A stretch of DNA of 64,000 nt from Malacoraja senta (Eukaryota): positions 620,001 through 684,000 of the forward strand of contig JAXLNO010002938.1 of assembly GCA_038087875.1 (NCBI GenBank). The letters are read 5' to 3'. Below the pieces are notes generated by a model, which searched no databases, was not told the origin of the DNA, and saw only the letters and a program-made list of their open reading frames with translations. The position numbers were made by a program, and so were the translations under genes. Shown piece by piece: positions 2,671 to 34,157 of the stretch; position 1 is the stretch's first letter; each line of letters starts with the position of its first letter.

Positions 2671-2701
<31 letters not shown>

Positions 2702-3768: not shown

Positions 3769-5174
3769 CACACTCACTCACACACACACCACACAACCAC
3801 ACACACACCCACACCCACACACTCGCTCACACACACCCACGCACACACTCACTCACACACACCCACGCACACACTCACTCACACACACACCCACACACCC
3901 CACGCCCACACACACACAACCCACCCACCCCACCCCCACCCCACCCCACCCGCACCCTCCCCACCCCACCAATCCAGTGTTGTGTGGTGGGTGACTGTAA
4001 GGCACTGTTGCAGTAATCAATTTACTTGACTACAATCGACGTGATCAAGTCCCCCATGGCAGCTGATCCAGATACAAGAGATCCACGGTGATTTAATTCA
4101 GTTTGCTTTGGAGATACAGCATGGAAACAGGCCCTTCAGCCCACCGAGTTCATGCTGACCATCGATCACTCATTCACACTTGTTCCATGTTATCCCACTT
4201 TCAAATCCACTTTCCACACACCAGGGATATTTTACAAAGGCCAATTAACCTGCACAATGTCCCCCACTAGAGGGCATAGTTATAAGCTGAGATGTACAGG
4301 GAAAGGTTTATTTACACAGAGTAGTGGGGGCCTGGAACACATTGCCAGGGATGGTGGTGGGCAGATATTGTGTACTCTGGTCGTCTCCTGCCCTCCCACT
4401 GCCAGCCCAACTTCCACACCTCGCCAAGCCTCCTGCATGGCCGTGCCTCACCCATTAACGTGCCCGGACTGAGCTGTGCCCAGCACTGGGTCTCGGGGTT
4501 AGACTCGCAGTCACACAGTTCAACTCTTCTGTCATTGTGTGGCAGCTTTTGCCTCTTCATGTCTGCCCTTGTCCATCTACCCATCAACCCCCCACCATGT
4601 ATCCACCTATCACTCACCAGACCCTCCCCCACCTCTTCCAGCTTTCTTCCCCCCCCCCCCCACCACAATCTGTCTGCTGTCTGAAGAAGGGCCCGATCTG
4701 AAACATCACCTGTCCATTTTCTCCAGAGATGCTGCCTGACCTTTTGTAAACCAGCATCTACATGTCCTTATGTTTCCCACCCATGTACCTGTCCATGTGT
4801 CTTTTAAACAGTGTAATCAAACGTTAGACTCAACACTGGGAAAAGACTGTGAGCATCCACTTTATAGAGGCTTGAGCATATGGAGGTGTATAAAATCATG
4901 AGGGGATTATCCAGGCTCGGAGAGTCAAGAACCAGAGAGCACAGGTTTAAGGTGAGAGGGGCAAGGTTTAATAACAACTTGGGGGCAACTTTTTCACTCC
5001 AAGGGTGATGGGTGTTTGGACAAAGCTGCCAGAGGCCGGGTCAAACCTGTCCTCACCCTCTACACTTCTCCTTTCACCTCTCACATGCTCCAAGTTAAAG
5101 GTGTAGCCATGAGCACCTGCATGGGCCCCAGCTGTGCCTGCCTTTTTATTATTTACGTTAAGCAGTCCTAGAAA

Positions 5175-6420
5175 CATAGAAAACATAGAAAAATAGGTGC
5201 AACATTAGGCCATTCGGCCCTTCATGCCAGCAATGCCACTCAATATGATCATGGCAGGTCATCTAAAATGAATACCCCGTTCCCCGTACCCCTTGATTCC
5301 TTCATCCCTAAAAGCTAAATTTAACTTTCTCTTGAAAACATCCAGTGAATTTACCGCCATTGCCTTCTGGGGCAGAGAATTCCACAGATTCTCAACTCTC
5401 TTGGTGAAAACGCTTTTCCTCATCTCAGTCCTAAATGGCCTGCCCCTTATTCTTATACTGTGGCTAGACAAAAATGCTGGAGAAACTCAGCGGGCGAAGG
5501 AAATAGGCAACGTTTCGGGCCGAAACCCTTCTTGAGACTGATGTGAGGGGGGGGGGGGAAAGAAAGGAAGAGGTGGAGCCAGAGGGCGGAGGGACAGCTG
5601 AGAAGGGGAGGAGACAGTAAGGTCGACCTGAAATTAGAGAAGTCAATGTTCATACCGCTGGGGTGCAAACTGCCCAAGGGAAATATGAGGTGCTGCTCCT
5701 CCAATTTACTCCTCCCCCCTCCGAAAAAGTTCCTTCATAAACTGTGATCCCTGGTTCTGGACTCCCCCAACAGCGGGAACATTTTTCCTGAATCTATCCT
5801 GTCCAATCCTTCAAGAATTGTATATGTTTCTATAAGATTCCCTCTCATCCTTCTAAATTCCAGTGAATATAGGCCCAGTCGACCAATTCTTTTATCATAT
5901 GTCAGTCCCGCCATCCCGGGAATTAACCTGGTGAACCTACACTGCATTCCCTCAATAGCAAGAATGTCCTTCCTCAAATTAAGAGTCCAAAGATGCACAC
6001 AATACTCCAGGTGTGGTCTCACCAGGGCCCTGTACAACTGCAGTAGGGCCTCCTTGCTCCAAAACTCAAATCCTCTTGCAATGAAGGACAAATTCTTCAC
6101 TGCCTGCTGTACTTGCATGCTTACGTTCTGTGACTGATGTACAAGGACACCCAGGTCTCGTTGCACCTCCTCTTTTCCTAATCTGACAACATTCAGACAA
6201 TAATCTGATTTCCAGTTCTTGCCACCAAAGTGGATAACCTCACATTTATCCACATTATACTGCATCTGCCAAGCATCTGCCCACTCACCCAACCTATCCA
6301 AGTCACCCTGCAGCCTCATAGCATCCTCCTCGCAGCTCACACGGCCATCCAGCTTTGTGTCATCCGCAAACTTGGAGATGGTACATTTAATTTCCTCATC
6401 TAAATCATTAAGAAATATTA
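5175..6420 (-). mobile_element. CR1 LINE RT 3' fragment with a nested Penelope-type tail (~5465-5710)
   Basis: ORF 5735-6472 contains the KFADDTKL, QYNVDKC and RPHLEYC motifs. Its paralogue is at ~26105-27360. Confidence 0.9.
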
Positions 6421-6429
6421 TAAATAACA

Positions 6430-6790
6430 ATATTTTGTCCTTATTCCAAACGTACACTGGTACCTCCCACAACTCTTTCTCCGCTACATCAACGACTGCA
6501 TCGGGGCTACCACCTGCACCCGTGCAGAACTCATTGATTTAATTAACTTCATCACTAACCCACGCTGCCCTCACATTCACCTGGACTTTCTCTGATGCCG
6601 CTCTCCCCTCTCGTGATCTCTCTGTCTCCAAAACTGGGGACAGACTATTGACTGATGTCTACTACAAACCTATCGACTCACACAGTTATCTCCACTACAC
6701 CTCCTCCCACCCTGACTTTTGTAAATACACTATTCCCTGCTCCCAATGTCTCTGCCTCTGCCTCATCTGCTCCCAAGATGAGACTTTCCA
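6430..6790 (+). mobile_element. Degenerate Penelope-like RT fragment
   Basis: Bases CTCCGCTACATCAACGACTGCATCGGG read LRYINDCIG (a decayed YIDD motif), followed by YYKP-type sequence. Its paralogue is at ~27370-27950. Confidence 0.65.
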
Positions 6791-7354
6791 CTCCATCGAT
6801 AGGTGACGTTTTGGGTTGAGATCCTTCTTCAGACTTTCCAGAAATGCTGCCTGACCTGCCGAGTTCCTCCAGCACTTTATGTCCTCTTGTGTAATAACCT
6901 ACCAGCATCTACAGTTCTTTGTTTCTACTACTTAATATGCTGTAAGACCAACAGCACCGCCTCTTTTATAATGTGGATTCATTCCAAGACATGGCTGTTC
7001 ATTTCCTCTAATTCTTGGCTTCTATGACCTTCTGTACTGTAAATACAGTTGCAACCTCACCAATCTCCTGTGGATTCACACACAGACCATCATATTCATC
7101 CTGCACGGATTCTAATCTCTCAAAAATTACCCTTTTGCTATTTACATACTTGTAGAAACTCAGGATGCTCCTTTAACCTATCTGCCAAATCTCTCATCTC
7201 CCTTATTTAACCTCCTGATCTCCCTGTTTCAATGTACCAGGGGTTATTATGCTGTGCCCAGCCCGACACTGACCCTCACCCACTGACTGGTGAACCCTGT
7301 GCCCATCTGACCACTGACCCCATCATCCCCTGACCGGAACAAGGGTGCCCAGCC

Positions 7355-7515
7355 CGACACTGACCCTCACCCACACACTGACCCTCACCCACTGACACTG
7401 ACCCTCACCCAGACAGTGACCCTCACCCACACACTGACCCTAACCCACACACTGACCCTCACCCACACACTGACCCTCACCCACACACTGACCCTCACCC
7501 ACACACTGACCCTCA
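7355..7515. repeat. 18-bp minisatellite (ACTGACCCTCACCCACAC)n in class I intron 1, copy A
   Basis: About 9 tandem units directly visible. Confidence 0.95.
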
Positions 7516-7563
7516 GCCACTGTGGGGGACTGGGTTGCCAGCCCATCACTTCCCCTCACCCAC

Positions 7564-7630: not shown

Positions 7631-7843
7631 GGTCGCCCCCGACTGTCCAGGTTGTGGTGAGTTTGCGAGTCCTGGGCGCATGCGCGGTTCACTCTGCTCC
7701 GCTCGCCCGCCCGCTTCACCCCCGCACCCCGCGCTGATTGGTCGGCGCCGTGTCCGCGGCCAATCACAGTCCTGCCCGCCCGTGAGTCACCGGTCTCCGG
7801 GCAGAACAGCCCCGAGAAGTTGGTGAAAAATAGCCCAGTCTGT

Positions 7844-7906
7844 CCAATCAGCGGCACAGCTGACGCCGCGTCACCGGTTGCCGGGTAGAGAAGAGCGCGG
7901 CAGGTT
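7844..7906 (-). promoter_or_regulatory. S-X1/X2-Y (enhanceosome) module, gene A
   Basis: Minus strand: AACCT (7902-7906), 16 nt, CCCGGCAACCGGTG (7872-7885) overlapping TGACGCG (7867-7873), 20 nt, CTGATTGG (7844-7851). Further CCAAT boxes, TGACTCA and GCGCATGCGC lie closer to the ATG. Confidence 0.85.
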
Positions 7907-7907
7907 A

Positions 7908-8839
7908 TCAAGTCAAGTCAAGAATCAAGAATCAAGTTTCCTTTATTGTCATTCAGACCTTTCGGTCTGAACGAAATTGTGATGCCTGCAGTCATACACA
8001 GAACCAATAATAACAAAACATACAATAAACACAAATTAAACATCCACCACAGTGAGTTCACCAAGCACACCCTCACTGTGATGGAGGCAAAGTCTTAGTC
8101 TCCGTCTCTTCCCTCCTTGTTCTCCCTCTGCGCTGAGGCGATCGATCCAGGCCGAAGATGCCGCCCTCCATTCCAGCGGACCTCCGTGGTGATGTCGCCG
8201 CCGCCGAAAGCCGGAACGCCGTCTCCGCTCCGAGACGGCCCGCCACAGCATGAGCCCCGGGTCCCGAAGTCTCCGCTCCGGGCCACCGCCCCAGCTCCAG
8301 GCCCCGTAGTCTCCGCTCCGGACCCCGCTGCACCAGCTCCAGGTCCCGCATTCTCCGCTCCGGACCCCGCTGTGTCAGCTCCAGGTCCGAAGTCTCCGCT
8401 CGGGCCACCGCCCCAGCTCCAGGCCCCGCAGTCTCCGCTCCGGACCCCGCTGTATCAGCTCCAGGTCCCGCAGTCTCCGCTCCGGACCCCGCTGTATCAG
8501 CTCCAGGTCCCGCAGTCTCCGCTCCGGACCCCGCTGTATCAGCTCCAGGTCCCGCAGTCTCCGCTCCGGACCCCGCTGTATCAGCTCCAGGTCCCGCAGT
8601 CTCCGCTCCGGACCCCGCTGTATCAGCTCCAGGTCCCGCAGTCTCCGCTCCGGACCCCGCTGTATCAGCTCCAGGTCCCGCAGTCTCCGCTCCGGACCCC
8701 GCTGCATCAGCTCCAGGCCCCGTAGTCTCCGCTCCGGACCCCGCTGTATCAGCTCCAGGTCCCGAAGTCTCCGCTCCGGACCCCGCTGCATCAGCCAGGC
8801 CGCCGCCGAAAGCCAGAACGCCGCACCAGCAAGTGTGTC
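7908..8839 (-). mobile_element. Non-autonomous retroelement with internal 42-bp VNTR and Rex1/L2-type 3' tail, inserted in promoter A
   Basis: 19-bp TSD AGAAGAGCGCGGCAGGTTA (7889-7907 and 8840-8858); absent from copy B; tail ATTTCGTT-stemloop-AATGACAATAAA-(CTTGATT/CTTGA)n. Confidence 0.85.
8293..8791. repeat. 42-bp GC-rich VNTR (CAGCTCCAGGTCCCGCAGTCTCCGCTCCGGACCCCGCTGTAT)n
   Basis: About 12 tandem units; these explain the QLQVPQSPLRTPLY and LIQRGPERRLRDLE repeat ORFs. Confidence 0.95.
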
Positions 8840-8864
8840 AGAAGAGCGCGGCAGGTTAGCTCAT

Positions 8865-8876
8865 GAAACCGAAAGT
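8865..8876. promoter_or_regulatory. ISRE/IRF element of gene A (displaced)
   Basis: GAAACCGAAAGT matches the IRF consensus GAAANNGAAA. It lies 958 nt from the first S box versus 7 nt in copy B. Confidence 0.75.
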
Positions 8877-9665
8877 GTGAAGCGGGAGAGAGAGGTGGGG
8901 CCCACCGACACAGACCCTGACACAGACCCTGACACAGACCCTGACACAGACCCTGACACAGACCCTGACACAGACCCTGACACACAGACCCTGACACACA
9001 GACCCTGACACAGACCCTGACACACAGACCCTGACACACAGACCCCGACACAGACCCTGCAACACAGACCCTGACACAGACCCTGACACAGACCCTGACA
9101 CACAGACCCTGACACACAGACCCTGACACAGACCCCGACACACAGACCCTGACACACAGACCCTGATACAGACCCTGACACAGACCCTGACACAGACCCT
9201 GACACACAGACCCTGACACACAGACCCTGGCACAGACCCCGACACACAGACCCTGACACACAGACCCTGATACAGACCCTGACACAGACCCTGACACAGA
9301 CCCTGACACAGACCCTGACACACAGACCCTGACACGCAGACCCTGACACAGACCCTGACACACATACCTTGACACAGACCCTGACACAGACCCTGACACA
9401 CAGACCCTGACACACAGACCCTGACACAGACCCTGACACACAGACCCTGACACACAGACCCCGACACAGACCCTGATACAGACCCTGACACAGACCCTGA
9501 CACAGACCCTGACACACAGACCCTGACACACAGACCCTGACACAGACCCCGACACACAGACCCTGACACACAGACCCTGATACAGACCCTGACACAGACC
9601 CTGACACAGACCCTGACACACAGACCCTGACACACAGACCCTGACACAGATCCTGACACACAGAG

Positions 9666-10437
9666 TTTTTAAAGAGTTAAAGAAGGAACTGCAGATGCTG
9701 GAAAATCGAAGGTACACAAAAATGCTGGAGAAACTCAGCGGGTGCAGCAGCATCTATGGAGCGAAGGAAATAGGTAACGTTTCGGGCCGAAACCCTTCTT
9801 CAGACTGATAGGGGGTGGGGAGAAGAAAGGAAAAAGGAAAAAGGCGGAGGAGGAGCCCGAGGGCTGGGGGGGGGGGGGGGGGGAAGGAGACAACCAGATG
9901 GCTGATGAAGGGGAGGGGACAGCAAGGGCTAGCAGAATTGGGAGAATTCAATGTTCAAGCCCCCAGGATGTAGACTGCCCAAGCGGAATATGAGGTGCAT
10001 TTCCTCCAATTTACGGTGTTGCTCGCTGTGGCCACGGAGGAGACCCAGGACAGAGAGGTCAGATACGGAATGGGAGGGGGAGTTGAAGTGCTGAGCTACC
10101 GGGAGTTCAGGTTGGTTATTGCGGACCGACCGGAGGTGTTCGGCGAAACGATCTCCAAGCCTCCGCTTGGTCTCACCGATGTAGATCAGCTGGCATCTAG
10201 AGCAGCGAATGCAATAGATGAGGTTGGAGGAGATGCAGGTGAACCTCTGTCGCACCTGGAACGACTGCTTCGGTCCTTGAATGGAGTTGAGGGGGGAGGT
10301 GAAGGGACAAGTGTTGCATCTCTTGCGGTTGCAAGGGAAAGTACCAGGGGAGGGGGTGGTATGGGAGGGAAGGGAAGAATTGACAAGGGAGTTACGGAGG
10401 GAGCGGTCTTTGCGGAAGGCAGACATGGGGGGGAGAT
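9666..10437 (-). mobile_element. 5'-truncated Penelope-like element: GIY-YIG endonuclease C-terminus plus terminal repeat
   Basis: Reading frame ending at 9929: ...CNRKRCNTC...NLIYCIRCSRCQLIYIGETKRRLGDRFAEHLRSVR...LNIEFSQFC*, followed by a tail with a hammerhead-like core. Absent from copy B. Confidence 0.9.
9776..9803 (-). ncRNA. Minimal type-I hammerhead-like core in a Penelope tail
   Basis: CTGAAGA-A-GGGT(TTCG)GCCC-GAAACGTT. Similar intact cores at 28615-28642(+) and 31217-31244(+); degenerate copies near 4681, 5515, 6805, 12196, 26440, 28500 and 41774. Stem I is weak (2 bp). Confidence 0.55.
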
Positions 10438-11113
10438 AGACCCTGATACAGACCCTGACACAGACCCTGACACAGACCCTGACACACAGACCCTGACACA
10501 GACCCTGACACAGACCCTGACACACAGACCCTGAGACAGACCCTGACACACAGACCCCGACACAGACCCTGACACACAGTCCCTGACACAGACCCTGACA
10601 CAGACCCTGACACACAGACCCTGACACAGACCCTGACACACAGACCCTGACACAGACCCTGACACACAGACCCAGACACACAGACCTTGACACACAGAAC
10701 CTGAGACACAGACCCTGACACAGACCCTGACACACAGACCCTGACACAGACCCTGACACAGACCCTGACACACAGACCCTGACACAGACCCTGGGGACAT
10801 GAACCCTGAGACACAGACCTTGAGACACAGACCCTGACACACAGATCCTGACACACAGACCCTGAGACACAGACCCTGAGACACAGACCCTGAGACACAG
10901 ATCCTGAGACACAGACCCTGAGACACAGACCCTGAGACACAGACCCAAGCAGAGGAAACAAACTGCAGAAGCACATTGACTGGTCGGGTGGCATCTGTGG
11001 AGGGAGAGGGATGGTTCATGTTCCGGGTCGCGGCCCTGCCTCGGGGGTTGAGGGGAGAGAGCCAGTACCACGAGGATAGACACAAAAAGCAGGTGTAACT
11101 CAGCGAGTCAGAC

Positions 11114-12190
11114 TTGATTATTGATTATACCTTTAATAATCCTTTGCAGGAAATTACAATGCCACGACAGCTTCAAGACAGACATAACACCACAAATAGC
11201 TTCCATACTTAACAAGTTAAAATACAAGTTAAAATACAAGTTAAAATACAATTAATTAAAAAAAAGTGCAGTTATTTATGCGCATTATATAACCTTGTCG
11301 CAGCTGGTAAACAGGACTTCCTATGTCTCTCCGTTTTGCACATTGGTGCAATCAGTCTCTGACTGAAGCTGCTGCTCTTGATCACCTTCAGGGCATGGAG
11401 TGGGTGAGTGGGGTTGGTCATTATAGAACCCAGTTTTTTGAGAGTTCTGGCCTCTGCTACCTGCTGGACCGTTCGTTGCTCAGCCCCGACCACTGAGCCG
11501 GCGTTCCTGATCAGTTTGTCCAGTCTGTTTTTGTCCGCTATGCGAGCGCCATCTCCCCAACAGGCCACCGCAAAAAACAGAGCACTGGCCCCCACTGAAT
11601 GGTAGACACTGCACAGTGGGGGTTGGCAGATGTTAAATGCCCTCAGCCTCCTTAAAAAATACAGTCGGCTTTGTCCCTTCCTGTACACCGCCTCCATATG
11701 ACACTTCCAGTCCAGCTCCCTGTCAAGCTGCACACCAAGGTACCTGTGGTTAGCGAGCACCTCCACCTCAGTGCCCTTAATGGTGATTGGTGTTGCTTGA
11801 GTCTTCCTCCTCCCCCTCCTGAAGTCCACAACTATCTCCTTGGTTTTTGTGGTGTTAAGATGGAGGTTATTGAGTGCACTCCACTCCACAAAGTTACTTA
11901 TTATGTCTCTGTACTCCTCCTCATTGCCCCCTTGAATGAGGCCGACAACAGCTGTGTCATCCGAAAACTTCTGCAAAAAGCAGCTGTTGGTGTTATATCG
12001 GAGATCCGCTGTGTAGATGGTAAACAGGAATGGAGCCAGCACAGTTCCTTGTGGAGCCCCTGTGCTGCTCAAGATGGTGCTTGAGACATTGTTGTTCTGT
12101 AGGCGCACGTACTGTGGTCTGAGGGAAAGGTAATCCAAACACCACAGTACCAGTGATGGAGCCACTTTCATCTTCTCCATCTTCTCCCCT
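11114..12190 (-). mobile_element. 5'-truncated Rex1/Babar-type LINE (RT C-terminal half)
   Basis: ORF 11272-12225 has GAPQGTVLAPFLF, KFSDD, KTKEIVVDFRR and RLYFLRRL. It is inserted between GTCAGAC and AGCATCTG, which are contiguous in copy B (31205-31219). Confidence 0.92.
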
Positions 12191-12941: not shown

Positions 12942-13145
12942 TGTAAAGAAGTGTTATCGACACATCGTTACTTAACTTCATTTATTCATACTGCAGCATT
13001 ACAGTAGGCACTAGCTGTACGTGGTCTATCACTGGAACTAGAGAGCGATATGTGGGTGGGGAGGTTGTAATTATACTTGTGATATGGGGAGTGGTTAGTA
13101 GTGATGAGGTAACTATATTAAAGGCACATGCATATCTCAACTACA
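12942..13145 (-). repeat. Gypsy 3' LTR (204 bp)
   Basis: 3 mismatches versus 17477-17680; preceded on the minus strand by the polypurine tract CCAAGGGGAAGGA. Confidence 0.97.
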
Positions 13146-13214
13146 TCCTTCCCCTTGGAAACGAAAGGCAAACACAATAGTGACAGGGCGACCACGTCTC
13201 ATGCGCTAGAACAG

Positions 13215-16200
13215 TTAAGCAAAGTCATCATATCGGACAGGCGGCTTGACAACACGTCCCGACCGGGTTCGCATCTCGCCATCCTCCCTTCCGGCAGGAA
13301 GAAGTGGCACAGGTGAGGACCGACGAAGTGGAACGGGGGAACCGGGAGGGGACGGAGAAGACAAGGGCAGAAAGGCAGGAGGAGATGAGGGTTCAGCAGC
13401 GGGTAGCGCGCGGGTAGGCGAGTGAGGACTAGCCGGAGAAGGATGGGGCGGAAGGAGAGGAGAGGGTAGAGATCGTGGCATGCGAGCGGGCAGAGCATCG
13501 CCCGGGTGCTGAAACTGCAGCGGGGGAGCAAAAGGATCGGCGGGAGGCGATCGCGGCTCATTGACGAGCCGCATGTGTTGGCGGGACCGGCGGTAAATGG
13601 TTCCCGCATGGTCGACGAGGTAGGACCTGGGCGACCCAGCAGAGGCGACGACGGTAGCGTGCTTGGAGTGACCGGAGGGGGTCTGCATGCGGACGACCTG
13701 TCCGGGGAAGAGGCGCGGCAGTGGGTGGCAGGACCTGTCATAGGAACGCTTCTGAACATCGTGCCTAAAGGCAATGCGTTCCTGAACAGCAGCAGGCTTG
13801 AGGACAGAGGGGATGAGGGAGCGATGGGTCACCGGGATCGGTCGTCTGGTAGCGCGAGACATGAGCCGCTGAGCAGGGGAGCCCATGTTAGGGTCGCGTG
13901 AGATGTTGCGGAGGTTGAGGGGGGCCAGATAGAAGTCCGAGTTGGACAAGCGACATTGTTCCAGCAACTTCTTTGCACTGCGGACGGCGCGCTCGGCCAG
14001 ACCGTTGCTTTGCGGGTACTCAGGGCTACTGGTGAAGTGGCGGAAGTTCCATCTGGATGCGAAAGCTTTAAACTCGGAGCTCGTGAATTGGCTGCCATTG
14101 TCCGACTGCAGGCTGGCCGGGGTGCCAAAAGTGCACAAAATGATGGCCCAACTTGTCGACAACGGCCGAGGGGGTGAGGGAGTGCAGATGGTCGACCTCG
14201 AACCAGCTGGAGTAGGAGTCGACGACGACCAGGAAGTGTTTGCCCCGCCACTCGAAAATGTAAACGGCAACCGCCATCCAGGGCAGTTCGGGGGCAGGCT
14301 GCTGCAGGAGAGGCTGACGTTGCTGGTGGGGGGGCGAGACTGTTGCAGGTGGAACACGAGGAGACCCTCTCCCGGATGTATTGAGCCATACCAGGCCAGT
14401 AGAAATGGCTCTGGGCGTGAGACAGGGTGGCTTCGGCCCCAGGATGACCGCGGTGAGCGACCTGAAAATAGTGGTCGTGCAGCGCAGCAGGCACGACAAC
14501 CTTGTGACCTTTCACCACCACGCCGTCGTGTAGTACGATCTCATCGCGTACCAGGAAGTAGGGCACGGCGCCAGCCGGCAAAGCGGAACGGCGGTCGGGC
14601 CAGCCCTGCTGGATGATGGCAGAAAGCTGTTGCAGGGCAGGATCATTGGCAGTGTGTTCAACCAGGGACTTCATCTGCTGTGAAGGGACAATGTTTACAT
14701 GGAGCACCAACAGGTCAGACATTTCATAGGGGTGGCGATCTGTGGATGTTAGCGGGGCGCGGGACAACGTGTCAGCCACGAACATGTCCTTGCCCTTATG
14801 ATAAACCACGTCAAAAGTGAAGCGCTGGAGCTGCAGCATCATGCGCTGCAGGCGGGATGAGGCAACATGGATCGATTTGTTGAGAATGGTGACAAGCGGC
14901 TGGTGATCAGTTTCAATGGTGAAAGTGTTGCCCAGGATGTAGTCCTTGAATTTGGAGCAGGCAAACACCACGGCCAGTAGCTCCTTCTCGATCTGCGCGT
15001 AGTGTTGTTCGGCAGCGGTCAAGGTGCGGGACGCGAAGGAGACAGGCAGCTGCAGGCCGTCATGGAGCTGTAGGCAAGCGGCACCGAGCCCGAACCGAGA
15101 GGCGTCGCAGGTGAGGATAATGGGACGCTGCAGGTCAAAAAACGTGAGTGTGGGGGTACTGATTAGCTTGGATTTAAGGATGTCGAAGGCTTTCTGGTGT
15201 TGGGGGGACCAAGCCCAGGCCGTGTCCTTCTTTATCAACTCCCTCAGGGGTGCGCTGAGCTCGCTGAGGTCGGGGATGAACTTCCCCAGGTAGTTTACCA
15301 TGCCTAGGAAGCGTTGCAGGCTGGGCACATCAGTTGGAGAAGACATCCCGGAGATGGCAGCCGTTTTCTGCGGGTCGGGTTTCAGCCCCGAGGCAGTGAA
15401 TACATGCCCAACATATGTGACCTCCGGGACGCGGAATCGGCACTTCTTGGGGTTCAGTTTCAAGTTGATTTGCCGTGCCCGGTCTAGGACTTGGCGGAGG
15501 TTGAAGTCGTGTTCGGCGACATCCTTACCGTAGACCAGGATGTCGTCAACGATGATGGCGCACGGTAGACCCGTAAACAGCTGCTCCATTGTCCGTTGGA
15601 ACACCTCGCTTGCAGAGTTGATTCCGAATGGCATTCGGAGGAACCGAAATCTGCCGAAAGGGGTGCTAAAAGTTGTCAAGATGGAGGACTGCTCGTCAAG
15701 CGGTATCTGCCAGAAGGAGCTCTTGGCATCGAGGACAGAAAAGATTGCGGCCGGACCAACCTGTGCAGCGACGTCCTCTACTGTTCTCATAGGATAGTGC
15801 GGGCGTTTAATGGCCAGGTTGAGGTCTTTGGGGTTGATGCAAATGCGTATTTCGCTTTTGTCCTTTTTCGCGGCAACAACCATGGTGGAGACCCACCTGG
15901 TGGGATCGCTGACCGCCTTTAGGATGCCCATTTTTACCATGCTGTGCAGCGTCGATTCTACTTTGTCCTTCATGGCGAAGGAGACACGGTGTGGCGCACG
16001 GACCACGGGCTCGACCTTGCGGTCGACTACAATCTTGTAGTTGCAGGGCAGCTTGCCCAGCTCGTCATCAAAGCAGTCAGGATATTCAGTCAACGGGTCC
16101 ACGAGGGCCCGCACCTGGTGGATGTCACGGTGGAAGGAGACCAGGCCCAAGTCCTGGCATGCTTCGGTGCCCAACAGGGTAATATATTTGCGATCGAGGA

Positions 16201-23976: not shown

Positions 23977-24176
23977 NNNNNNNNNNNNNNNNNNNNNNNN
24001 NNNNNNNNNNNNNNNNNNNNNNNNNNNNNNNNNNNNNNNNNNNNNNNNNNNNNNNNNNNNNNNNNNNNNNNNNNNNNNNNNNNNNNNNNNNNNNNNNNNN
24101 NNNNNNNNNNNNNNNNNNNNNNNNNNNNNNNNNNNNNNNNNNNNNNNNNNNNNNNNNNNNNNNNNNNNNNNNNNNN
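23977..24176. other. Assembly gap (exactly 200 N, probably an unsized join)
   Basis: Lies between alpha2 of gene B and the start of copy A; the only place gene B alpha3/TM/cytoplasmic exons could be hidden. Confidence 0.95.
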
Positions 24177-24480
24177 AGGTAGAGAGAGGGGGGTAGAGAG
24201 AGGGGAAGAGAGAGGGAGAGATGGGGGAGAGAGAGAGGAGGGAGAGAGATGGGGAGAGAGGGGGGATGGAGGGGAGGAGAGTGGGGTGAGGGAGAGGGGG
24301 GGATGCGAGAGAGAGGAGGGGAGAGAGGGGAGGAGAGGAGGGAGGGGGGGGGAGATGGTAGTGGTTGGAGGTTGGGGACGGAAGGGGGGGGCAGAGGGGC
24401 GAGAGAGGGGGAGGGAGGAGGAGAGGTAGGATGGAGGGGGGAGGAAGATGGAGGCGGAGAGAGGGGGAGGGGGCATCATC
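24177..24480. repeat. GA-rich low-complexity tract (class I intron 3)
   Basis: Purine-rich on plus, directly after the alpha2 donor on the minus strand. Confidence 0.9.
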
Positions 24481-24494
24481 ACTGATCCACTCAC

Positions 24495-24767
24495 CGGGGG
24501 TGAGTTGACACTGTCCGGCCTGGACATGTTTCCGCAGCCATTCGATGCACTCATCCTCCAGGTAGGCTTTGGCCCGATGGACCAGGCCCATGTTCCGGTC
24601 CCACTTGTGTTTGGTGAACAACCCCCAGGTGACGGGCGTCACCCACACCATGTGCTCCTTGTCGAAGCTGATGAAGTCCTCTCCGTCCCAGCCGAACTGC
24701 ATGAACCCGGCGGTGGAGCCGTCCGAGCGCAGCTCACAGCCGTACATCCGCTGGAGAGTGTGGATCC
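24495..24767 (-). CDS. MHC class I heavy chain exon 3 (alpha2 domain), gene B; cartilaginous-fish UAA-like
   Basis: TTGCAG| acceptor, 273 bp, G|GTGAGT donor, phase 1-1. Encodes GIHTLQRMYGCELRSDGSTAGFMQFGWDGEDFISFDKEHMVWVTPVTWGLFTKHKWDRNMGLVHRAKAYLEDECIEWLRKHVQAGQCQLTP, with C101/C164, T143, K146, W147 and Y159 equivalents. The UAA resemblance is from recall, not a search. Confidence 0.97.
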
Positions 24768-24869
24768 CTGCAACACACGGCCCTTAGTGGAGGCGCTGAT
24801 GCACCCCCACCCCCCCCCCCCACACACACACACACACACACACAAAACGTGGTACATCCCCGCTCTCAC

Positions 24870-25130
24870 CTCCGCTCTGGTTGGTTCGCTGCTGCAGGGT
24901 CTGGATGTTGCCCTTGAACTGCTGCTCGTTGTTCCGCTCGATCTCTGTCTGCCGCTCCCAGTAGTCAGCGCCCTGACTCTCCGCCATCCACCGCTGCCGC
25001 GGCTCAGCCCTCTGAGTCACGCTGTCGTAGTGAACAATCTGCTCCTCGTCCACGAATCCGACCGCCGTGAACTCAGGGACCCCCGAGCCCGCGGTCACCC
25101 CCGTGTAGAAATAACGCAGCGAGTGGGAGC
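24870..25130 (-). CDS. MHC class I heavy chain exon 2 (alpha1 domain), gene B
   Basis: TTCCAG| acceptor, 261 bp, G|GTGAGA donor. Encodes GSHSLRYFYTGVTAGSGVPEFTAVGFVDEEQIVHYDSVTQRAEPRQRWMAESQGADYWERQTEIERNNEQQFKGNIQTLQQRTNQSG, with Y7, Y59, R84 and the N86 NQS glycosylation site. A 102-bp intron separates it from alpha2. Confidence 0.97.
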
Positions 25131-25160
25131 CTGGAACCGGGAGCGGATTCAGAGACAGCG

Positions 25161-25612
25161 NNNNNNNNNNNNNNNNNNNNNNNNNNNNNNNNNNNNNNNN
25201 NNNNNNNNNNNNNNNNNNNNNNNNNNNNNNNNNNNNNNNNNNNNNNNNNNNNNNNNNNNNNNNNNNNNNNNNNNNNNNNNNNNNNNNNNNNNNNNNNNNN
25301 NNNNNNNNNNNNNNNNNNNNNNNNNNNNNNNNNNNNNNNNNNNNNNNNNNNNNNNNNNNNNNNNNNNNNNNNNNNNNNNNNNNNNNNNNNNNNNNNNNNN
25401 NNNNNNNNNNNNNNNNNNNNNNNNNNNNNNNNNNNNNNNNNNNNNNNNNNNNNNNNNNNNNNNNNNNNNNNNNNNNNNNNNNNNNNNNNNNNNNNNNNNN
25501 NNNNNNNNNNNNNNNNNNNNNNNNNNNNNNNNNNNNNNNNNNNNNNNNNNNNNNNNNNNNNNNNNNNNNNNNNNNNNNNNNNNNNNNNNNNNNNNNNNNN
25601 NNNNNNNNNNNN
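25161..25612. other. Assembly gap (452 N) in class I intron 1
   Basis: N run. Confidence 1.
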
Positions 25613-28071
25613 CACACTCACAGCCACACCCACACACCCACGCACACACACAGGCTTCCACACACACACCCCACACGCACAAACCACACGCACACACCCC
25701 ACACACACACATACATACCCCACACACACACATACATACCCCACCCACACACACCCAACCCACATCCTCCCCACCAAACCCTGTTATGTCTGTGGGTGAT
25801 TGTAAGACAAGTGATCAAGTCCCCCATGGCAGCTGATCCAGATGATTAAGGTGCAAGAGATCCACGGTGATTTAATTGAGTTTGTTTTGGAGATACAGCA
25901 TGGAAACAGGCCCTTCAGCCCACCGAGTTCATGCTGACCATCGATCACCCATTCACACTTGTTCCATGTTATCCCAATTTCAAATCCACTTCCCACACAC
26001 CTTGATATTTTACAAAGGCCAATTGACCTGCAAAATGTCCCACACTAAAGGGCATAGTTATAAGCCGAGATGTACAGGGGAAGGTTTATTTACACAGATG
26101 CAACAGTAGTCCATTCGGCCCTTCATGCCAGCAACGCCATTCAATATGATCATGGCTTATCATCTAAAATCAATACCCCGTTCCTGCTTTTTCCCCATAT
26201 CCCTTGATTCCTTCATCCCTAAAAGCTAAATCTAACTCTCTCTTGAATACATCCAGTGAATTGACCTCGACTGCCTTCTGTGGCAGAGAATTCCACAGAT
26301 TCACAACTCTCTTGGTGAAAACGTTTTTCCTCATCTCAGTCCTAAATGGGCTACACCTTATTCTTAAACTGTGGCTTGCCAAAATGCTGGAGAAACTCAG
26401 CGGGTGCAGCAGCATCTATGGAGCGAAGGAAATAGGCACCGTTTCGGGCCAAAACCCTTCTTCAGACTGATGTGAGGTTGGGGGGGGGGGGGGGGAGAGA
26501 AGCAAGGAAGAGGTGGCGCCAGGGGGCTGAGGCAGAGCTGAGAAGGGGAGGAGACAGTAAGGACTACCTGAAATTAGAGAAGTCAATGTTCATACCGCTT
26601 GGGTGCAAACTGTCCAAGCGAAATATGAGGTGCTGCTCCTCCAATTTACTCCTCCTCCCTCCGAAAAAGTTCATTCTTAAAATGTGGCCCCTGGTTCTGG
26701 ACTCCCCAACAGCGGGAACATTTTTCCTGAATCTATCCGGTCCAATCCTTTAAGAATTGTATATATTTCTATGATATCCTCTCATCCTTCTAAATTCCAG
26801 TGAATGTAGGCCCAGTCGACCAATTCTCTCATCATATGTCAGTCCCGCCATCCCAGGAATTAACCTGGTGAACCTACACTGCACTCCCTCAATAGCAAGA
26901 ATGTCCTTCCACAAATTAAGGGACCAAAGTTGCACACAATACTCCAGGTGTGGTTTCACCGGGGCCCTGTACAACTGCAGTAGGGCCTCCTTGATCCAAA
27001 ACTCAAATCCTCTTGCAATGAATGCCAAATTCTTCACTTATTGCTGTACCTGCATGCTTACATTCTGTGAATGATGTACAAGGACACCCAGGTCTCGTTG
27101 CACCTCCTCTTTTCCTAATCTGACAACAATCAGACAATAATCTGATTTCCAGTTCTTGCCACCAAAGTAGATGACCTCACATTTATCCACATTATACTGC
27201 ATCTGCCAAGCATCTGCCCACTCACCCAACCTATCCAAGTCATCCTGCAGCCTTATAGCATCCTCCTCACAGCTCACACTGCCACCCAGCTTTGTGTCAT
27301 CCGCAAACTTGGAGATGTTACATTTAATTCCCTCATCTAAATCGTTAAGTAATATTGTAAATAACAATATTTTGTCCTTGTTCCAAACGTACTCTGGCAC
27401 CTCCAACAACTCTTTCTTCACTACATCAACGACTGCATCGGGCTACCTCCTGCACCCGTGCAGAACTCATTGATTTAATTATCTTCATCACTAACCCACC
27501 CTGCCCTCACATTCACCTGGACTTTCTCTGATGCTGCTCTCCCCTCTCGTGATCTCTCTGTCTCCAACACTGGGGACAGACTATTGACTGATGTCTGGTA
27601 CAAACCTACCGACTCACACAGTTATCTCCACTACCCCTCCTCCCACCCTGACTTTTGCAAATACACTATTCCCTGCTTCCAAAGTCTCTGCCTCTGCCTC
27701 ATCTGCTCCCAAGATGAGACTTTCCATTCTAGGACATCCGAGATGTAAACGTGTTTGCCCCCGGCTGCCATAGGTGGATCCCTCATCCACATCTCCTCTG
27801 TGTCCTGTAGTTCTGCTCTCTGCATTCCACACAGACCACTCCCTCTGCAACTCCTTGCTTCACTCACCCACTCCCACCCAAACCACCCACTCCCCAGGTA
27901 CTTCCCCCTGCAACCGCCCTGTTGGGCCATCACTTGTCTTTGCAGCTCTTCTTAAATAAAGACACAACGATCACCACCTCCAGTCTCTGGTGGCTCACTC
28001 GTATCTAAAGATAATGCAAATAATTCTTCCAGATCCCCTGCAATTCCTGCCCTAGCTTCCCACAATTTCGT

Positions 28072-28358
28072 TTATTGTTTTAGAGATACGCGCGGAAATA
28101 TGCCGTTCAGCCCACCGAGTCCGCACCGACCAGCGATCCCCGCTCACTCACACGATCCTACACACTAGGGACAATTATATTTACACCAAGCCAATTAACC
28201 TACAAACCTATTCTACTATAGAGTGTGAGAGGAAACAGAAGATCTTGGAGAAAACTCACACGGTCTTAGGGAGAACGTATGAACTCCGTACAGACAGCAC
28301 CCGTAGTCAGGATCGAACCCGGGTCTCTGTTTGGCAGTAGCTCTACCGCTGCGCCACC
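28072..28358 (-). mobile_element. tRNA-derived SINE (HE1/V-SINE-like)
   Basis: Minus strand: A-box GTGGCGCAGCGG, B-box GGGTTCGATCC, then a CTCCCTAAGACC-type body and short tail. Truncated relatives at ~4105-4255 and ~25878-26030. Present only in copy B. Confidence 0.8.
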
Positions 28359-29159
28359 CAGTGTACAAGGATATATGTGAAACGGCCTTTAGGTATTTAT
28401 CTACCTTAATATGCCATAAAAAAATTTAAAAAAATAGAACGCAAAGTGCTTGAGTAACTCAGCAGATCAGGCAGCATCACCGGTGAATACGGATCGGTGA
28501 CGTTTTGGGTTGAGATCATTCTTCAGACTCTCCAGAAATGCTGCCTGACCTGCCAAGTTACTCCAGCACTTTATGTCCTCTTGTGTAATAACCAACCAGC
28601 ATCTACATTTCTTTCTGAAGAAGGGTTTCGGCCCGAAACGTTGCCTGTTTCCTTCGCTCCATAGATGCTGCTGCACCCGCTGAGTTTCTCCAGCATTTTT
28701 GTGTACCTTCTACATTTCTTTGTTTCTACTACTTAATATGCCATAAGACCAGCAGCACGGCCTCTTTTATAATGTGGATTCATTCCAAGCCATGGCTGTT
28801 CATTTCCTGTAATTCTTGGCTTCTATGACCTTCTGTACCGTAAATACAGTTGCAACCTCACCAATCTCCTGTGGATTCACACATAGACCAACATATTCGT
28901 CCTGCATAGATTCTAATCTCTCCATAATTACAATGTTGCTCTTTACGTAATTGTAGAAACTCTCAGGATACTCCTTTAATTTATCTGCCCAATCGATCAT
29001 CTCCCTTATTTACCCTCCTGATCTCCCTGGTTCAATGTACCAGGGTTATTATGCTGTGCCCAGCCCGACACTGACCCTCACCCACTGATTGGTGAACCCT
29101 GTGCCCATCTGCCCACTGACCCCCCTCATCCCCTGACCGGAACAAGGGGCCCAGCCCGA

Positions 29160-29990
29160 CAGTGACCCTCACCCACACACTGACCCTCACCCACTGATAC
29201 TGACCCTCACCCACACACTGACCCTCACCCACTGACACTGACCCTCACCCACACTGACCCTCACCCACACACTGACCCTCACCCACACACTGACCCTCAC
29301 CCACTGCACTGACCCACTGACACTGACCCTCACCCAATGACACTGACCCTCACCCACACACTGACCCTCACCCACACACTGACCCTCACCCACTGACACT
29401 GACCCTCACCCACACACTGACCCTCACCCACACACTGACCCTCACCCACACACTGACCCTCACCCACACACTGACCGTCACCCACTGACACTGACCCCCC
29501 CACCCACAGACATTGACCCTCACACACTGAGACTGATCCTGACCCACTGACACTGACCCTCACACATTGACACTGACCCTCACCCTCTGACCGTCACCCT
29601 CACCCACACACTGACCCTCACCCACACACTGACCCCACCCACTGACACTCACCCACACACTGACCCTCACCCACACACTGACCCCCACCCACTGACACTC
29701 ACCCACACACTGACACCCACCCACTCACTGACCCCCACCCACTGACCCTCACCCACACACTGACCCTCACCCACACACCGACCCTCACCCACACACTGAC
29801 CCTCACCCAATGACACTGACCCTCACACACTGATCCTCACCCACACACTGACCCTCGCACACTGACACTGACCCTCACCCACACACTGACCCTCACCCAC
29901 ACACTGACCCTCACCCACACACTGACCCTCACCCACTGACACTGACCCTCACACACACTGACCCTCCCCCACACACTGACCCTCGCCCAC
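29160..29990. repeat. 18-bp minisatellite (ACTGACCCTCACCCACAC)n in class I intron 1, copy B
   Basis: About 830 bp of tandem units with variants; much longer than in copy A. Confidence 0.95.
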
Positions 29991-30033
29991 TGTCGGGGAC
30001 TGTGTTGCCAGTCCATCACTGCCCCTCACCCAC

Positions 30034-30097: not shown

Positions 30098-30311
30098 GGT
30101 CGCCCCCGACTGTGCAGGTTGTGGTGAGTTTGTCTCCTGGGCGCATGCGCGATTCACTCTGCTCCGCTCGCCGCCCGCCCGCTTCATCCCCGCACCCCGC
30201 GCTGATTGATCGGCGCCGTGACCACGGCCAATCACAGTCCTGCCCGCCCGTGAGTCACCGATCTCCGGGCAGAAGAGCCCCGAGAAGTTGGTGAAAAATA
30301 GCCCAGTCTGT

Positions 30312-30393
30312 CCAATCAGCAGCACAGCTGGCGCCGCGTCACCGGTTGCCGGGTAGAGTAGAGCGCAGCAGGTTGGCTCATGAAACCGAAAGT
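30312..30393 (-). promoter_or_regulatory. ISRE-S-X1/X2-Y promoter module, gene B
   Basis: ISRE GAAACCGAAAGT (30382-30393); S AACCT (30370-30374); 16 nt; X CCCGGCAACCGGTG (30340-30353); X2 TGACGCG (30335-30341); 20 nt; Y CTGATTGG (30312-30319). Confidence 0.88.
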
Positions 30394-30420
30394 GTGAAGC
30401 GGGAGAGAGTGGTGGGGTCC

Positions 30421-31045
30421 ACCGACACAGACCCAGGGACACAGACCCTGACACAGAACCTGACACACAGACCCTGACACAGACTCTGACACACAGACCC
30501 TGACACACAGACCCTGACACACAGACCCTGACACAGACCCTGACACACAGACCCTGACACACAGACCCTGACACACAGACCCTGACACACACCCTGACAT
30601 ACAGACCCTGACACACAGACCCTGACACACACCCTGACACACAGACCCTGACACACACCCTGACACACAGACCCTGACACACACCCTGACACACAGACCC
30701 TGACACATACCCTGACACACAGACCCTGACACACACCCTGACACACAGACCCTGACACACACCCTGACACACAGACCCTGACAATCAGACCCTGACACAG
30801 ACCGTGACCCCGACACACAGACCCTGACACAGACCGTGACCCCGACACACAGACCCTGACACACAGACCCCGACACACAGACCCTGACACAGACCGTGAC
30901 CCCGACACACAGACCGTGACACACAGACCGTGACACAGAACCTGACCCTGACACACAAACCCTGACACACACACCCTGACACAGACCGTGACACACACAC
31001 CCTGAGACACAGACCCTGACACACACACCCTGAGACACAGACCTA
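30421..31045. repeat. 12/14-bp satellite upstream of promoter B
   Basis: GACACACAGACCCT / GACACACACCCT units; uninterrupted orthologue of the 8905-10950 arrays. Confidence 0.95.
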
Positions 31046-31678
31046 AGCTGAGGAAACAAACTGCTGAAGCACATTGACTGGTCGGGTGGCATCTGTGGAG
31101 CGAGAGGGATGGTTCATGTTCCGGGTCGCGGCCCTGCCTCGGGGATTGAGGGGAGAAAGCCAGTACAACGAGGATAGACACAAAAAGCTGGAGTAACTCA
31201 GCGGGTCAGACAGCATCTGAAGAAGGGTCTCGACCCGAAACGTCACCTATTCCTTCTACCCAGAAATGCTGTCTGACCCGCTGAGTTACTGCAGCTTTTT
31301 GTATCTATCTTCAGTTTAAAGCAGCATCTGCAGTTCATTCCTACGCTGTATAACGCGGGGATGGGGTGAGGTCGGTGCCGGCAGGTGACAGGAGGAACCG
31401 GGTGAGGAAGGACCGTATTCCTGGCCCTGTGACACGGGGCTGTGACTTGTTCCCTGTGTCCGGATCTGTCCCCGGTCTGTATTCCCCACCCTGGGGCACG
31501 GAGCTGTGATGTTCTCAGCTTCCTCGGCCGTGGCCGTGAGGGTTCGGGCGGAGAGCCGGCCCGGGAGGTTCACGATGGAGTGAACTGATCCGTGTCAGTC
31601 CGTGCTGAGGGCGGAGCTTGTGGGAAGCGGCTGCCGGCGGCCAGGGAGAGGTTGGACTGTGGACTGTGGTGGGTGACA

Positions 31679-31688
31679 GGGGATTCCC
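31679..31688. promoter_or_regulatory. NF-kB-like site (enhancer A kB1-like) upstream of gene B
   Basis: GGGGATTCCC in unique DNA conserved between the copies; copy A reads GCGGATTCCC (12566-12575). Confidence 0.5.
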
Positions 31689-34157
31689 GGGATGTAACAG
31701 CATCGTGCTGACACCAGCACTCTGCACCATGGTTTTAAAAACCTCAGAGTCATAGAGTCATTCAGCGTGAAAACAGGCCTTTTGACCCAACTTGCCCACG
31801 CCGTCCAAGATGCCCCATCTACACTAATCTCACCTGCTGGAGTTTGGCCCATATACCTCTAACTCTGTCCTGTACATGTACCTGTCTAAATGTTTCTTAT
31901 GTCGTGATAGTACCTGCCCCAACTACCTCCTCCAGCAGCTCGTTCCAAACACCACTCTGTACAAAACCAGGCTCCTACACTCAGGATCCAGCCTATCCAG
32001 ACTCTCCCGATAGCTCAAACCCTCCTGACCACGTAGTATCTTAGTAGACATTGTTGCACCTTTACCGGTTTAATGACAGGGCAACAGGTACTGCACCGAG
32101 TTCAACAAATACGGCCTTGCCAAGCAGCTGTGGTTGAATGGCGGAGTAGACTTGATGGGCCGAATGGTCTAATTCCGCTCCTATCACTTATGTACATGGC
32201 TTCCCAACTCCTGTACTCAATACTTTGACTGATGAAGGCAAGCGTGTCACACGTCTCCTTCACCGCCCTGTCAACCTGTGTCGCCACCTTCATGGAACTA
32301 TGTCCCTTCCCCCCCAGGTCTCTCAGTCCCACAACATTCCCCACAGCTCCAGCACTTATGGCGTAAGTCCTGTCCCTCCACCTTGCAACACCTTGTGTTT
32401 ATTGTTATTAAACTCCACCTGCCATTTCTTGGCCCCATTGTCCGAGGTGATCAATATCCCATTGTAGATCACCTTCACTGTCCATCTGTGGAGAGAGAAA
32501 CACAGTCAACGTTTCAGGATTGAGGCCCATCGACAGAAATCACAGGAATGAAGCTGGGTGCCGTGAACCAAACCTCTCACAGGTATTCCAACTGTCCCCT
32601 CCTTCCCCACGCCTCTATCCATGTGCTCCCTTTCCCCATTACCACCTCTCCCCATCCTCTCCCCTCACGATCACTACCAATCCCCTCCAATCCCCTCCTC
32701 CCACTCCACACCCCTTCCTACCATCCTAATCTCTTCCTCCCCTTCTCTATACACTCCCTTTCCCTAGCCCCCCCTCACAAACCCCTCACAGACCCCTCCC
32801 CACACCTGCCCACCCTCCTAATCTTCCCTTCCCCCCATTCTCTATATCCTCCTCCCATTCCCCTCCTTCCATTCCATCTCCCATCCTCCCCTCCCCTACC
32901 CTCTCATCACCTCTTCCCCACCCATGCCCGGCACTTGCCCAGCTCTCTCCTTGCCTGTTCCAGCTCTCACCCCCACCGATCCTCATGTCAACCTCCCCCT
33001 CCCTCTCACCGTCATTGTCCCACCCCTCCACCACACCCCACGCCCCATTCCCTGGGCTGTGGGGAACAACATTAATACATCGTGAACATAGAATGCCCTC
33101 GGTGACGCAGCTTCCACAGTGCTCTGGAGGTGAGGATTACAAACATTCTCCACTCCCTCTCAGTGTGGACATTTCTCCCTTTGATGGGCGACTGGCCCCT
33201 GGCCACAGACCCCTCAGCCGGGGGGACACAGTCTGTCCATCCCCGTGGGCTTTGTCTAACAGTCAGTCACCTCCCTCTCATGCTCACAAACTCTGGAGAC
33301 TCCGCTCCCAGTCGACTCCGTCGCAGATCGTCGGCACATCCCCCATCCCTGGGACCGGCCCATCAATCTGTCATAGGTACATCCTGTCCCAGGTATGAAG
33401 ACTAAACCTGACAGCCCGTGACCTCTACACTTTAACCCCACAGCCCCGTGACCTGCGTCTTCAATGTGGTGTCACTGCTCGATAGGGTGGTGAAGAAGGT
33501 TCTTGGTGGATTGGCCTTCATCAGTCAGTGTATTGAGTTTGGAAACTTGGACATTACGTTGCAGTTGTGCAAGATGTTGGTGAGGCCACACTTGGAGTAT
33601 TGAGCTCTGTTTTGGTCACCCTGCTACAGGAACAATGTTATTAAGGTGGAATGATTGCATTGAAGATTTACGAGGATGTTGCCAGGACTCGAGTGCCTAG
33701 TTTAGTTTAGTTAAGTTTATTGTACATGATTACATGATACAATACATGATCAAATGCGGGCAAATGGTCTATTTCCATGCTGACTATGTAATGTGAAAAA
33801 ACAGCAGCCTATAAGAACTCTGCGGTTCGAGCAGCATCTGTGGATATGAAAGGCGTAGAAAAGGGTATGTGGCGGTTTCAGACTGAGACTCTGCATCAGG
33901 GTCTGTGAATGCAGGGTCTCCACCTGAAACAACAACATGCACTGTTTCCACCACGGATCCCCTTTCCAGATTCCAGCGCCTGCAGCGTCTTATGCCCTCA
34001 CCGACACCGAGCCTTGTCCAACGCCTCCACCCCCCTCCCCCGCCACCTCCAGCTCTGATCTGCAGCAGGGAGCCGGGGGTGGGTTGGCTCGTGGACATTA
34101 ATCTCCCCCGCTCTCCAGTTACGATGCCTCGCCACTGAAGCGTTTCCAGCTCTCTCT

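Follow-up and report, generated by a model that had tools for sequence, protein, structure and literature searches.

Organization of the class I region

The stretch analysed here (Malacoraja senta, contig JAXLNO010002938.1, positions 620,001 to 684,000; hereafter the window, i.e., all 64 kb of it) contains 5' parts of major histocompatibility complex (MHC) class I genes, which are read on the minus strand and are arranged in two units, A and B (Table 1). Judged from their alignment, these are two independently evolving versions of an upstream flank, a promoter, a leader exon, and intron 1. Five runs of N interrupt the window (1392-1536, 145 N; 3569-3768, 200 N; 23977-24176, 200 N; 25161-25612, 452 N; 34506-34714, 209 N), and three pieces are concerned: contig A (3769-23976), an island of 984 bases (24177-25160), and contig B (25613-34505). 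The only alpha1 and alpha2 exons of the window are situated on the island. Contig A, around 20 kb in length, is the sole piece with a gap of exactly 200 N on both sides, the other gaps being odd-sized. In the initial annotation the two copies were described as joined through an exactly 200-N gap; the run at 23977-24176 indeed has this length, but between the copies there are this run, the island with alpha1 and alpha2, and the 452-N run.

For comparison, three loci were used that are colinear with the units of the window, i.e., those of Rhinoraja longicauda (L001), Leucoraja erinacea (L002), and Amblyraja radiata (L003; CM021395.1, with gene C and its protein P0266). A fourth, L004, is the unplaced A. 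radiata scaffold JAAGWR010000062.1.

In gene B, in-phase splicing of the leader exon, alpha1, and alpha2 yields 199 open codons, and, because this frame ends in phase 1, the gene needs an alpha3 exon. Both domain exons match the Pfam family MHC_I (PF00129; 1.2e-26 for alpha1 at profile positions 2-88 and 1.7e-24 for alpha2 at positions 93-177, gene B only), and the best solved structure for them is the nurse-shark class I molecule 6LUP (4e-29 and 3e-32, respectively). According to the translation and its alignment to 6LUP, seven of the eight residues that hold the peptide termini are present (Y7, Y59, Y/R84, T143, K146, W147, Y159), position 171 being occupied by His. Together with the leader motif PALLAGAQAAG, which is common to skate leaders, and with a promoter composed of an interferon-stimulated response element (ISRE) and the boxes X1, X2, and Y, these matches bear out the initial annotation of a 5' region of a UAA-like class I gene. 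The island exons and B are hence to be regarded as the 5' part (leader, alpha1, and alpha2) of a class I gene of the shark UAA type.

The same plan of leader, alpha1, and alpha2, with all junctions in phase 1, is known from the elasmobranch UAA lineage (Gici-UAA, PDB 6LUP; A. radiata XP_032903661; L. erinacea P0176; Rostroraja eglanteria M4R434), with which the genes of the window also have in common the leader motif, the ISRE/X1/X2/Y boxes, and a CT-rich intron 3. Gene B differs from this lineage in being present as a 5' half only and in possessing His instead of Tyr at position 171. This His171 (WLRKHV), at a position holding the peptide N-terminus, is also found in the Rhinoraja protein P0250, whereas gene C and L. 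erinacea possess Tyr. Concerning alpha1 and alpha2 as a whole, identity to skate class I proteins is 76-79% (cluster-representative search, followed by a profile search); no annotated protein above 79% was found, and by this measure B is an allele or a locus separate from the annotated A. radiata gene.

Neither by motif search nor by tblastn with seven class I proteins (six from skates, one from a shark) was an alpha3, transmembrane, or cytoplasmic exon detected in the 64-kb window, and no exon attributable to TAP or PSMB was noticed in it. The missing 3' exons may lie in the gaps or on another scaffold. Unit A contains no exon beyond its leader.

No reading frame crosses the 452-N run or the 200-N run at 23977-24176. 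Both flanks of the 452-N run belong to intron 1, with a (CA)n microsatellite on one side and the other side situated 30 bases upstream of the alpha1 acceptor. The order of (CA)n and then alpha1 on one strand is found in all three comparator loci, at a spacing of around 90 bases in gene C, 0.7 kb in Rhinoraja, and 5.9 kb in L. erinacea, and this conserved order and strand of landmarks supports the join of contig B and the island. At the 200-N run, the CT-rich start of intron 3 abuts the far-upstream flank of A, a junction that occurs in none of the comparators; in L. erinacea, the flank homologous to the far-upstream end of A does not follow alpha2 but precedes the promoter by 7 kb. Since no comparator shows that junction, this run is to be considered a placeholder, across which continuity is unsupported; should B be a complete gene, at least 5-16 kb must be concealed in this run.

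Beyond the other 200-N run (3569-3768), where alpha1 of unit A is expected, a CT-rich tract of 3.5 kb follows on the wrong strand. The tract (1-3568) resembles that of class I intron 3, which is in sense orientation in B, gene C, and L. erinacea, but is antisense; the strand flip may reflect either a true inversion or a foldback of the assembly. A plain continuation of intron 3 of B was considered for 1-3568 and rejected, the tract being on the opposite strand. Simply turning the tract round would not be an option either if L003 adjoined the window, as the first part of the window would then run on into the contig carrying gene C. The assembly is interrupted at the intron 1 (CA)n repeat and at the CT-rich tract of intron 3, and these interruptions would account for the exons missing from the units.

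The promoter boxes, all of them predicted, were aligned across A (after its insertion had been taken out), B, C, and L. erinacea. On the minus strand, the order is ISRE (ACTTTCGGTTTCA), X1 (RFX-like), X2 (TGACGCGG; with TGACGC resembling a cyclic AMP response element), and Y (CTGATTGG), followed by the leader exon. The predicted ISRE and S-X1-X2-Y module align in all four; in Rhinoraja, conservation extends from the Y box onward only. In unit A, an insertion of 932 bases (7908-8839) parts the ISRE from X1, the promoter core being otherwise intact.

In the flank specific to B (33729-34505), 3.8 kb upstream of promoter B, an ISRE-like core (34159-34169), an AP-1-like TGACTCA (34195-34201), and a kappaB-like GGGGAGTTTCCC (34219-34230) are found. 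This flank could be a distal enhancer or another promoter, or its motifs could be due to chance. A search for it elsewhere in the window and in the comparator loci gave no match; among the two segments in which the homology of the copies has ended, only A23436-23976 matched, namely in L. erinacea.

Divergence of units A and B

The copies were aligned by self-BLAST, and identity was calculated from substitutions only, with tandem arrays excluded (4010 unique columns). A4041-23435 and B25811-33728 constitute a single colinear BLAST chain (blocks in Table 1) with 93.9% identity and a Kimura two-parameter distance (K2P) of 0.064, comprising 117 transitions, 129 transversions, and 26 small gaps. 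Across eleven blocks, K2P ranges from 0.047 to 0.079, and the BLAST identity of the blocks is between 87 and 95.5%, in agreement with the colinear copies of roughly 90-95% identity noticed initially; the duplication is taken as real, and the resemblance is well beyond chance. The homology stops at A23435/B33728, short of the contig ends, and the sequences are unrelated beyond these points. The transition/transversion ratio between A and B is 0.9, a ratio that is also found between ordinary repeat pairs of the window. As a sign of error, the low ratio was therefore rejected; it is a property of this genome.

Concerning length, A and B exhibit 13 differences, the polarity of which was set by the orthologous loci of L. 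erinacea and Rhinoraja longicauda and by gene C: six insertions (five in A and one in B), four or five deletions, and two changes in the length of tandem arrays. At least seven presence/absence events of transposable elements had been noted in the initial annotation; differences of length are indeed numerous, but insertions make up only six of the 13. Target-site duplications accompany three of the five insertions in A. The 18-mer array comprises 9 copies in A versus 46 in B, and the 12/14-mer arrays differ in length as well. By these differences, both lineages have been separate for a long time, and the distance between A and B is about four times the divergence between the long terminal repeats (LTRs) of the Ty3/gypsy element that was inserted in A after the split.

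Table 1. Features of the two class I units and of their surroundings, followed by the aligned blocks of copies A and B (positions in the window; TSD, target-site duplication; LINE, long interspersed nuclear element; UTR, untranslated region).
Feature	Position	Strand	Remarks
CT-rich low-complexity tract	1-3568	+	89% C+T on the plus strand; broken by the 145-N run at 1392-1536
200-N run	3569-3768	.	expected position, as judged from B and C, of the alpha1 and alpha2 exons belonging to unit A
Unit A, intron 1	3769-7563	-	(CA)n at contig edge, 3769-4001; 18-mer array, 9 copies, 7357-7520
Unit A, leader exon MWCPLLLPLLLLPALLAGAQAA	7564-7630	-	phase-1 GT donor; intact
Unit A, proximal promoter	7631-7907	-	predicted X1, X2 (7873-7866), Y (7851-7844), further CCAAT/ATTGG boxes, 5' UTR
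A-specific insertion, 932 bases	7908-8839	.	19-base TSD (7889-7907, 8840-8858); 42-mer array; absent from B, C, and L. erinacea
Unit A, predicted ISRE ACTTTCGGTTTCA	8864-8876	-	around 950 bases from X1-X2-Y
12/14-mer array upstream of promoter A	8907-10946	.	split by the insertion 9665-10437
A-specific insertion, 773 bases	9665-10437	.	GIY-YIG, Penelope-like fragment
A-specific LINE fragment (RVT_1)	11114-12190	-	no TSD seen; absent from B and C
A-specific Ty3/gypsy LTR retrotransposon	12945-17680	-	204-base LTRs, 3 differences (98.5%); TSD ACAAT; open pol frame of 1007 codons
A-specific LINE	17874-23299	-	poly(T) start; 11-base TSD TTGGAGTATTG; found in neither B nor L. erinacea
Far-upstream end of contig A	23436-23976	.	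matches L. erinacea L002 2927-3469 at 89.5%; absent from B
200-N run	23977-24176	.	separates intron 3 of gene B from the upstream flank of A
Gene B, start of intron 3	24177-24494	-	sense-strand CT-rich tract running into the 200-N run
alpha2 exon	24495-24767	-	phase 1 at both ends; T143/K146/W147/Y159, His at the Tyr171 position
Intron 2	24768-24869	-	between alpha1 and alpha2
alpha1 exon (GSHSLRYFYTG...)	24870-25130	-	phase 1 at both ends; Y7, Y59, R84
452-N run	25161-25612	.	within intron 1 of gene B
Unit B, intron 1	25613-30033	-	(CA)n at contig edge, 25613-25806; 18-mer array, 46 copies, 29159-29990
B-specific insertion, 95 bases	28614-28708	-	derived in B
Unit B, leader exon MRCPPLLLVLLPALLAGAQAA	30034-30097	-	phase-1 GT donor; in-frame splice to alpha1
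Unit B, promoter, uninterrupted	30098-30393	-	predicted ISRE 30393-30381, X1, X2 30341-30334, Y 30319-30312
Unit B, upstream region	30424-33728	-	14-mer array 30424-31043, then colinear with A, C, and L. erinacea
B-specific flank	33729-34505	.	unmatched in A, C, L. erinacea, and Rhinoraja
Deletions in A	B31501-31590, B32098-33461, B27727-28491	-	the last common to C, with identical breakpoints
Losses in B	A4321-5194 and end segment A23436-23976	.	derived in B
Aligned block	A4041-4320 ~ B25811-26098		BLAST
Aligned block	A5195-6790 ~ B26096-27726		BLAST
Aligned block	A6798-6920 ~ B28492-28614		BLAST
Aligned block	A6908-7522 ~ B28709-29325		BLAST
Aligned block	A7357-7906 ~ B29827-30374		BLAST
Aligned block	A8840-9664 and A10438-11113 ~ B30357-31211		BLAST
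Aligned block	A12191-12479 ~ B31212-31500		BLAST
Aligned block	A12478-12944 ~ B31591-32054		BLAST
Aligned block	A17681-17873 ~ B32048-32097 plus B33462-33602		BLAST
Aligned block	A23300-23435 ~ B33592-33728		BLAST

A third version of the gene and the status of unit A

Gene C, a complete class I gene of A. radiata, is 88-95% identical to both A and B and is closer to them than L. erinacea or Rhinoraja. In curated block alignments, distances are 0.042-0.076 between A and B, 0.055-0.079 between A and C, 0.070-0.099 between B and C, and 0.083-0.132 between any of the three and L. erinacea. A maximum likelihood tree based on 1311 columns left the order of A, B, and C unresolved, and the approximately unbiased (AU) test on the same columns rejected none of the three topologies. 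Concerning site patterns, 27 sites are private to A, 55 to B, and 56 to C, whereas 15 are of the AB type, 10 of the AC type, and one of the BC type. The AB-type sites cluster at the promoter and leader, where six derived sites are common to A and B and none to A and C. Intron 1, in turn, contains the AC-type sites and a deletion of around 800 bases which A and C share with identical breakpoints and which is absent in B. Unit A would accordingly be a mosaic, resembling B at the promoter and C in intron 1, A and B not being demonstrably closest relatives, and the three versions are best described as an open three-way split at 4-10% divergence. A mosaic or central position of A, in turn, points to past exchange between the lineages.

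The intermediate position of A between B and C in substitutions would also be expected if A were a chimeric or mis-polished consensus of B-type and C-type reads. This explanation is hardly credible: among the five private transposon insertions of A, three have clean target-site duplications, the LTR pair is itself 1.5% diverged, there are private deletions and the 27 private substitutions, and the transition/transversion ratio equals that of ordinary repeat pairs. Its private insertions and deletions show A to be a genuine sequence in its own right, no artefact of consensus building.

The initial annotation had posed the choice between tandem paralogues and two ancient alleles. Sequence alone indeed cannot settle whether alleles or separate genes are concerned, but the two-way choice is too narrow, as a third version exists in gene C of A. 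radiata, and the question is thereby wider than posed. If gene C shares one diploid assembly with A and B, there are three versions for at most two alleles, and therefore at least one real duplication; provided that gene C is from the same animal as the window, we infer that the region is a cluster of class I genes in which two or more loci are real and copies have exchanged sequence in the past. The situation is an ordinary one of multiple copies or haplotypes of class I genes in a poorly assembled region.

Our preferred reading, to which we assign a probability of about one half, is that A represents an uncollapsed alternative haplotype (haplotig) of one neighbouring unit, with B and C about equally likely as its counterpart, and that scaffolding would have set it between these neighbours. 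An intact third gene is a less likely explanation for A than a haplotig, for which the odds are about even. Several points argue for the haplotig: A is an orphan contig of small size, with placeholder gaps on both sides; the contigs of A and B share their end point, a (CA)n microsatellite; the window holds a single pair of alpha1 and alpha2 exons and no 3' exons; and the RefSeq set contains one full-length A. radiata protein of this lineage, in addition to an orphan gene part (alpha3, transmembrane, and cytoplasmic exons) on an unplaced scaffold. It is further supported by a documented type of error in which scaffolding turns retained diverged haplotypes into gap-separated tandem copies (Rhie et al. 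2021, PMC8081667) and by the scattering of the A. radiata MHC over unplaced scaffolds, the species having been dropped from a survey because its tap, c4, and MHC genes are situated on such scaffolds (Verissimo et al. 2023, PMC10751288). The arrangement resembles the heterotype false duplications of the former study (PMC8081667) in that a diverged version is found beside its counterpart, in the placeholder gaps, in the small repeat-ended contig, and in the highly polymorphic region concerned. It differs from them in that there are three versions instead of two, of which the artefact explains one at most. Such an artefact is defined by half read depth on both copies.

Some points weigh against this reading. 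Its haplotig part is drawn from the layout of the assembly. The uniform divergence, the near-equidistant versions, and the intermediate middle copy are what a tandem array with gene conversion would be expected to exhibit. The claim of at least two loci depends on gene C being from the same animal. If L003 adjoins the left edge of the window, gene C, which is read in the same direction as the units, would start about 3.4 kb beyond that edge; composition is discontinuous across this boundary, the edge of L003 being GA-rich and the start of the window CT-rich. Finally, A, B, and C lose homology to the upstream flank of L. erinacea at three different points, and no simple model fits this.

It is possible, at somewhat less than an even chance, that B, A, and C are three units truly arrayed in tandem along one chromosome, and that conversion or unequal crossing-over made the middle copy intermediate. 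A variant, covered by the same estimate, places the further exons of A and the 3' exons of B inside the two 200-N placeholders, or takes A as a truncated 5' duplicate. All three units have the same orientation and a plausible spacing, divergence is uniform along the whole unit, the versions form a near-trichotomy with A in the centre, and a variable number of additional MHC-Ia-like genes near MHC-Ia is described for elasmobranchs (PMC10751288); an orphan 3' half (P0264) is found in L. erinacea, too, as a second gene part. However, the 200-N gaps would have to hide much, since the distance from the end of alpha2 to the end of the gene is 5.3 kb in gene C and 16 kb in L. erinacea; nothing like the 3' flank of gene C is found between the units; and the CT-rich tract between A and C is wrongly oriented for an intron 3 of A. 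Furthermore, the most upstream copy, B, matches the ancestral flank only to L002 3469, whereas the middle copy, A, matches it to L002 2927, the reverse of what a simple tandem duplication predicts. In a comparison of L003 6615-7480, upstream of gene C, with the class I 3' flank as a test for a tandem junction, no match was found.

The copies A and B are adjacent and colinear, and in its strict form the allelic explanation takes them as the two haplotypes of one locus, i.e., as an old allelic pair, with gene C as the only other locus and the split promoter of A as a cis-regulatory polymorphism. Old MHC haplotype lineages are reportedly present in the nurse shark, as is said to have been found by Ohta and co-workers in 2002. 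The common microsatellite at which both contigs begin, the six derived promoter/leader sites common to A and B versus none common to A and C, and the marginally smallest distance between A and B are consistent with such a pair, which we nevertheless consider unlikely: the deletion of around 800 bases is common to A and C and not to B, the topology tests give no preference for A and B, the upstream flanks differ beyond A23435/B33728 and a third version exists, and the allelic lineages would have to be nearly as old as the duplication that separated B and C. Still more doubtful is a case of structurally different old haplotypes, one carrying B and C and the other a single hybrid A, B-like at its promoter and C-like in its intron 1, of the ancient unequal crossover type. 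If it were true, a class I gene of classical type in a cartilaginous fish would be naturally polymorphic both in copy number and in cis-regulation, in that a retroelement has moved the ISRE of A around 950 bases from the X-Y module.

Several class I genes of one lineage close together, in a number that varies by species, are also the pattern of the MHC-Ia-like clusters described by Verissimo et al. (2023, PMC10751288). A. radiata was excluded from that study, so that the present cluster is not described there, and, in contrast to those clusters, the 30 kb upstream of B showed no flanking zinc-finger genes.

In skates and rays, it is of interest how many class I genes of classical type are present and how old the corresponding allelic lineages are. 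For such questions, the 5' half of gene B, gene C, and the reality of sequence A can be trusted, whereas certain joins cannot, and A and B should not be counted as two genes or as two alleles without evidence at the level of reads. The transposon junctions found here are ready markers for a test of alleles versus paralogues.

Further observations on the comparator loci and on repeats

The unplaced A. radiata scaffold (L004) carries an ABC transporter gene and, 10 kb downstream of it, the orphan gene P0265, composed of alpha3, transmembrane, and cytoplasmic parts; a run of 500 N separates the two. The 3' flank of P0265 is 82-94% identical to that of gene C, and P0265 may be the missing 3' half of the gene whose 5' half is situated in the window.

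At L003 6700-6900, GGGGATTCCC, GGTTTCACCTTC, CCAAT, and TGAGTCA are followed by a leader-like run CCGCTGCTGCTG without ATG; the segment has the look of a degenerated promoter and leader of a class I gene, around 3 kb upstream of gene C.

In Pfam scans, no match was obtained for ten open frames outside repeats at 44-61 kb of the window, and a GC-rich island at 59400-60000 contains open frames likewise without a Pfam match. A second Ty3/gypsy copy (63278-64000) is 82% identical to that at 12945-17680 and is cut by the end of the window; by the open pol frame and the 98.5% identity of its LTRs in the copy within unit A, this family has possibly been active recently. Finally, the window contains an inverted pair of LINEs (39815-41618 and 47995-49796) with 92.6% identity over 1.8 kb, and members of the family of 39815-41618 are also found in introns of class I genes of L. 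erinacea and A. radiata at 91-95% identity.

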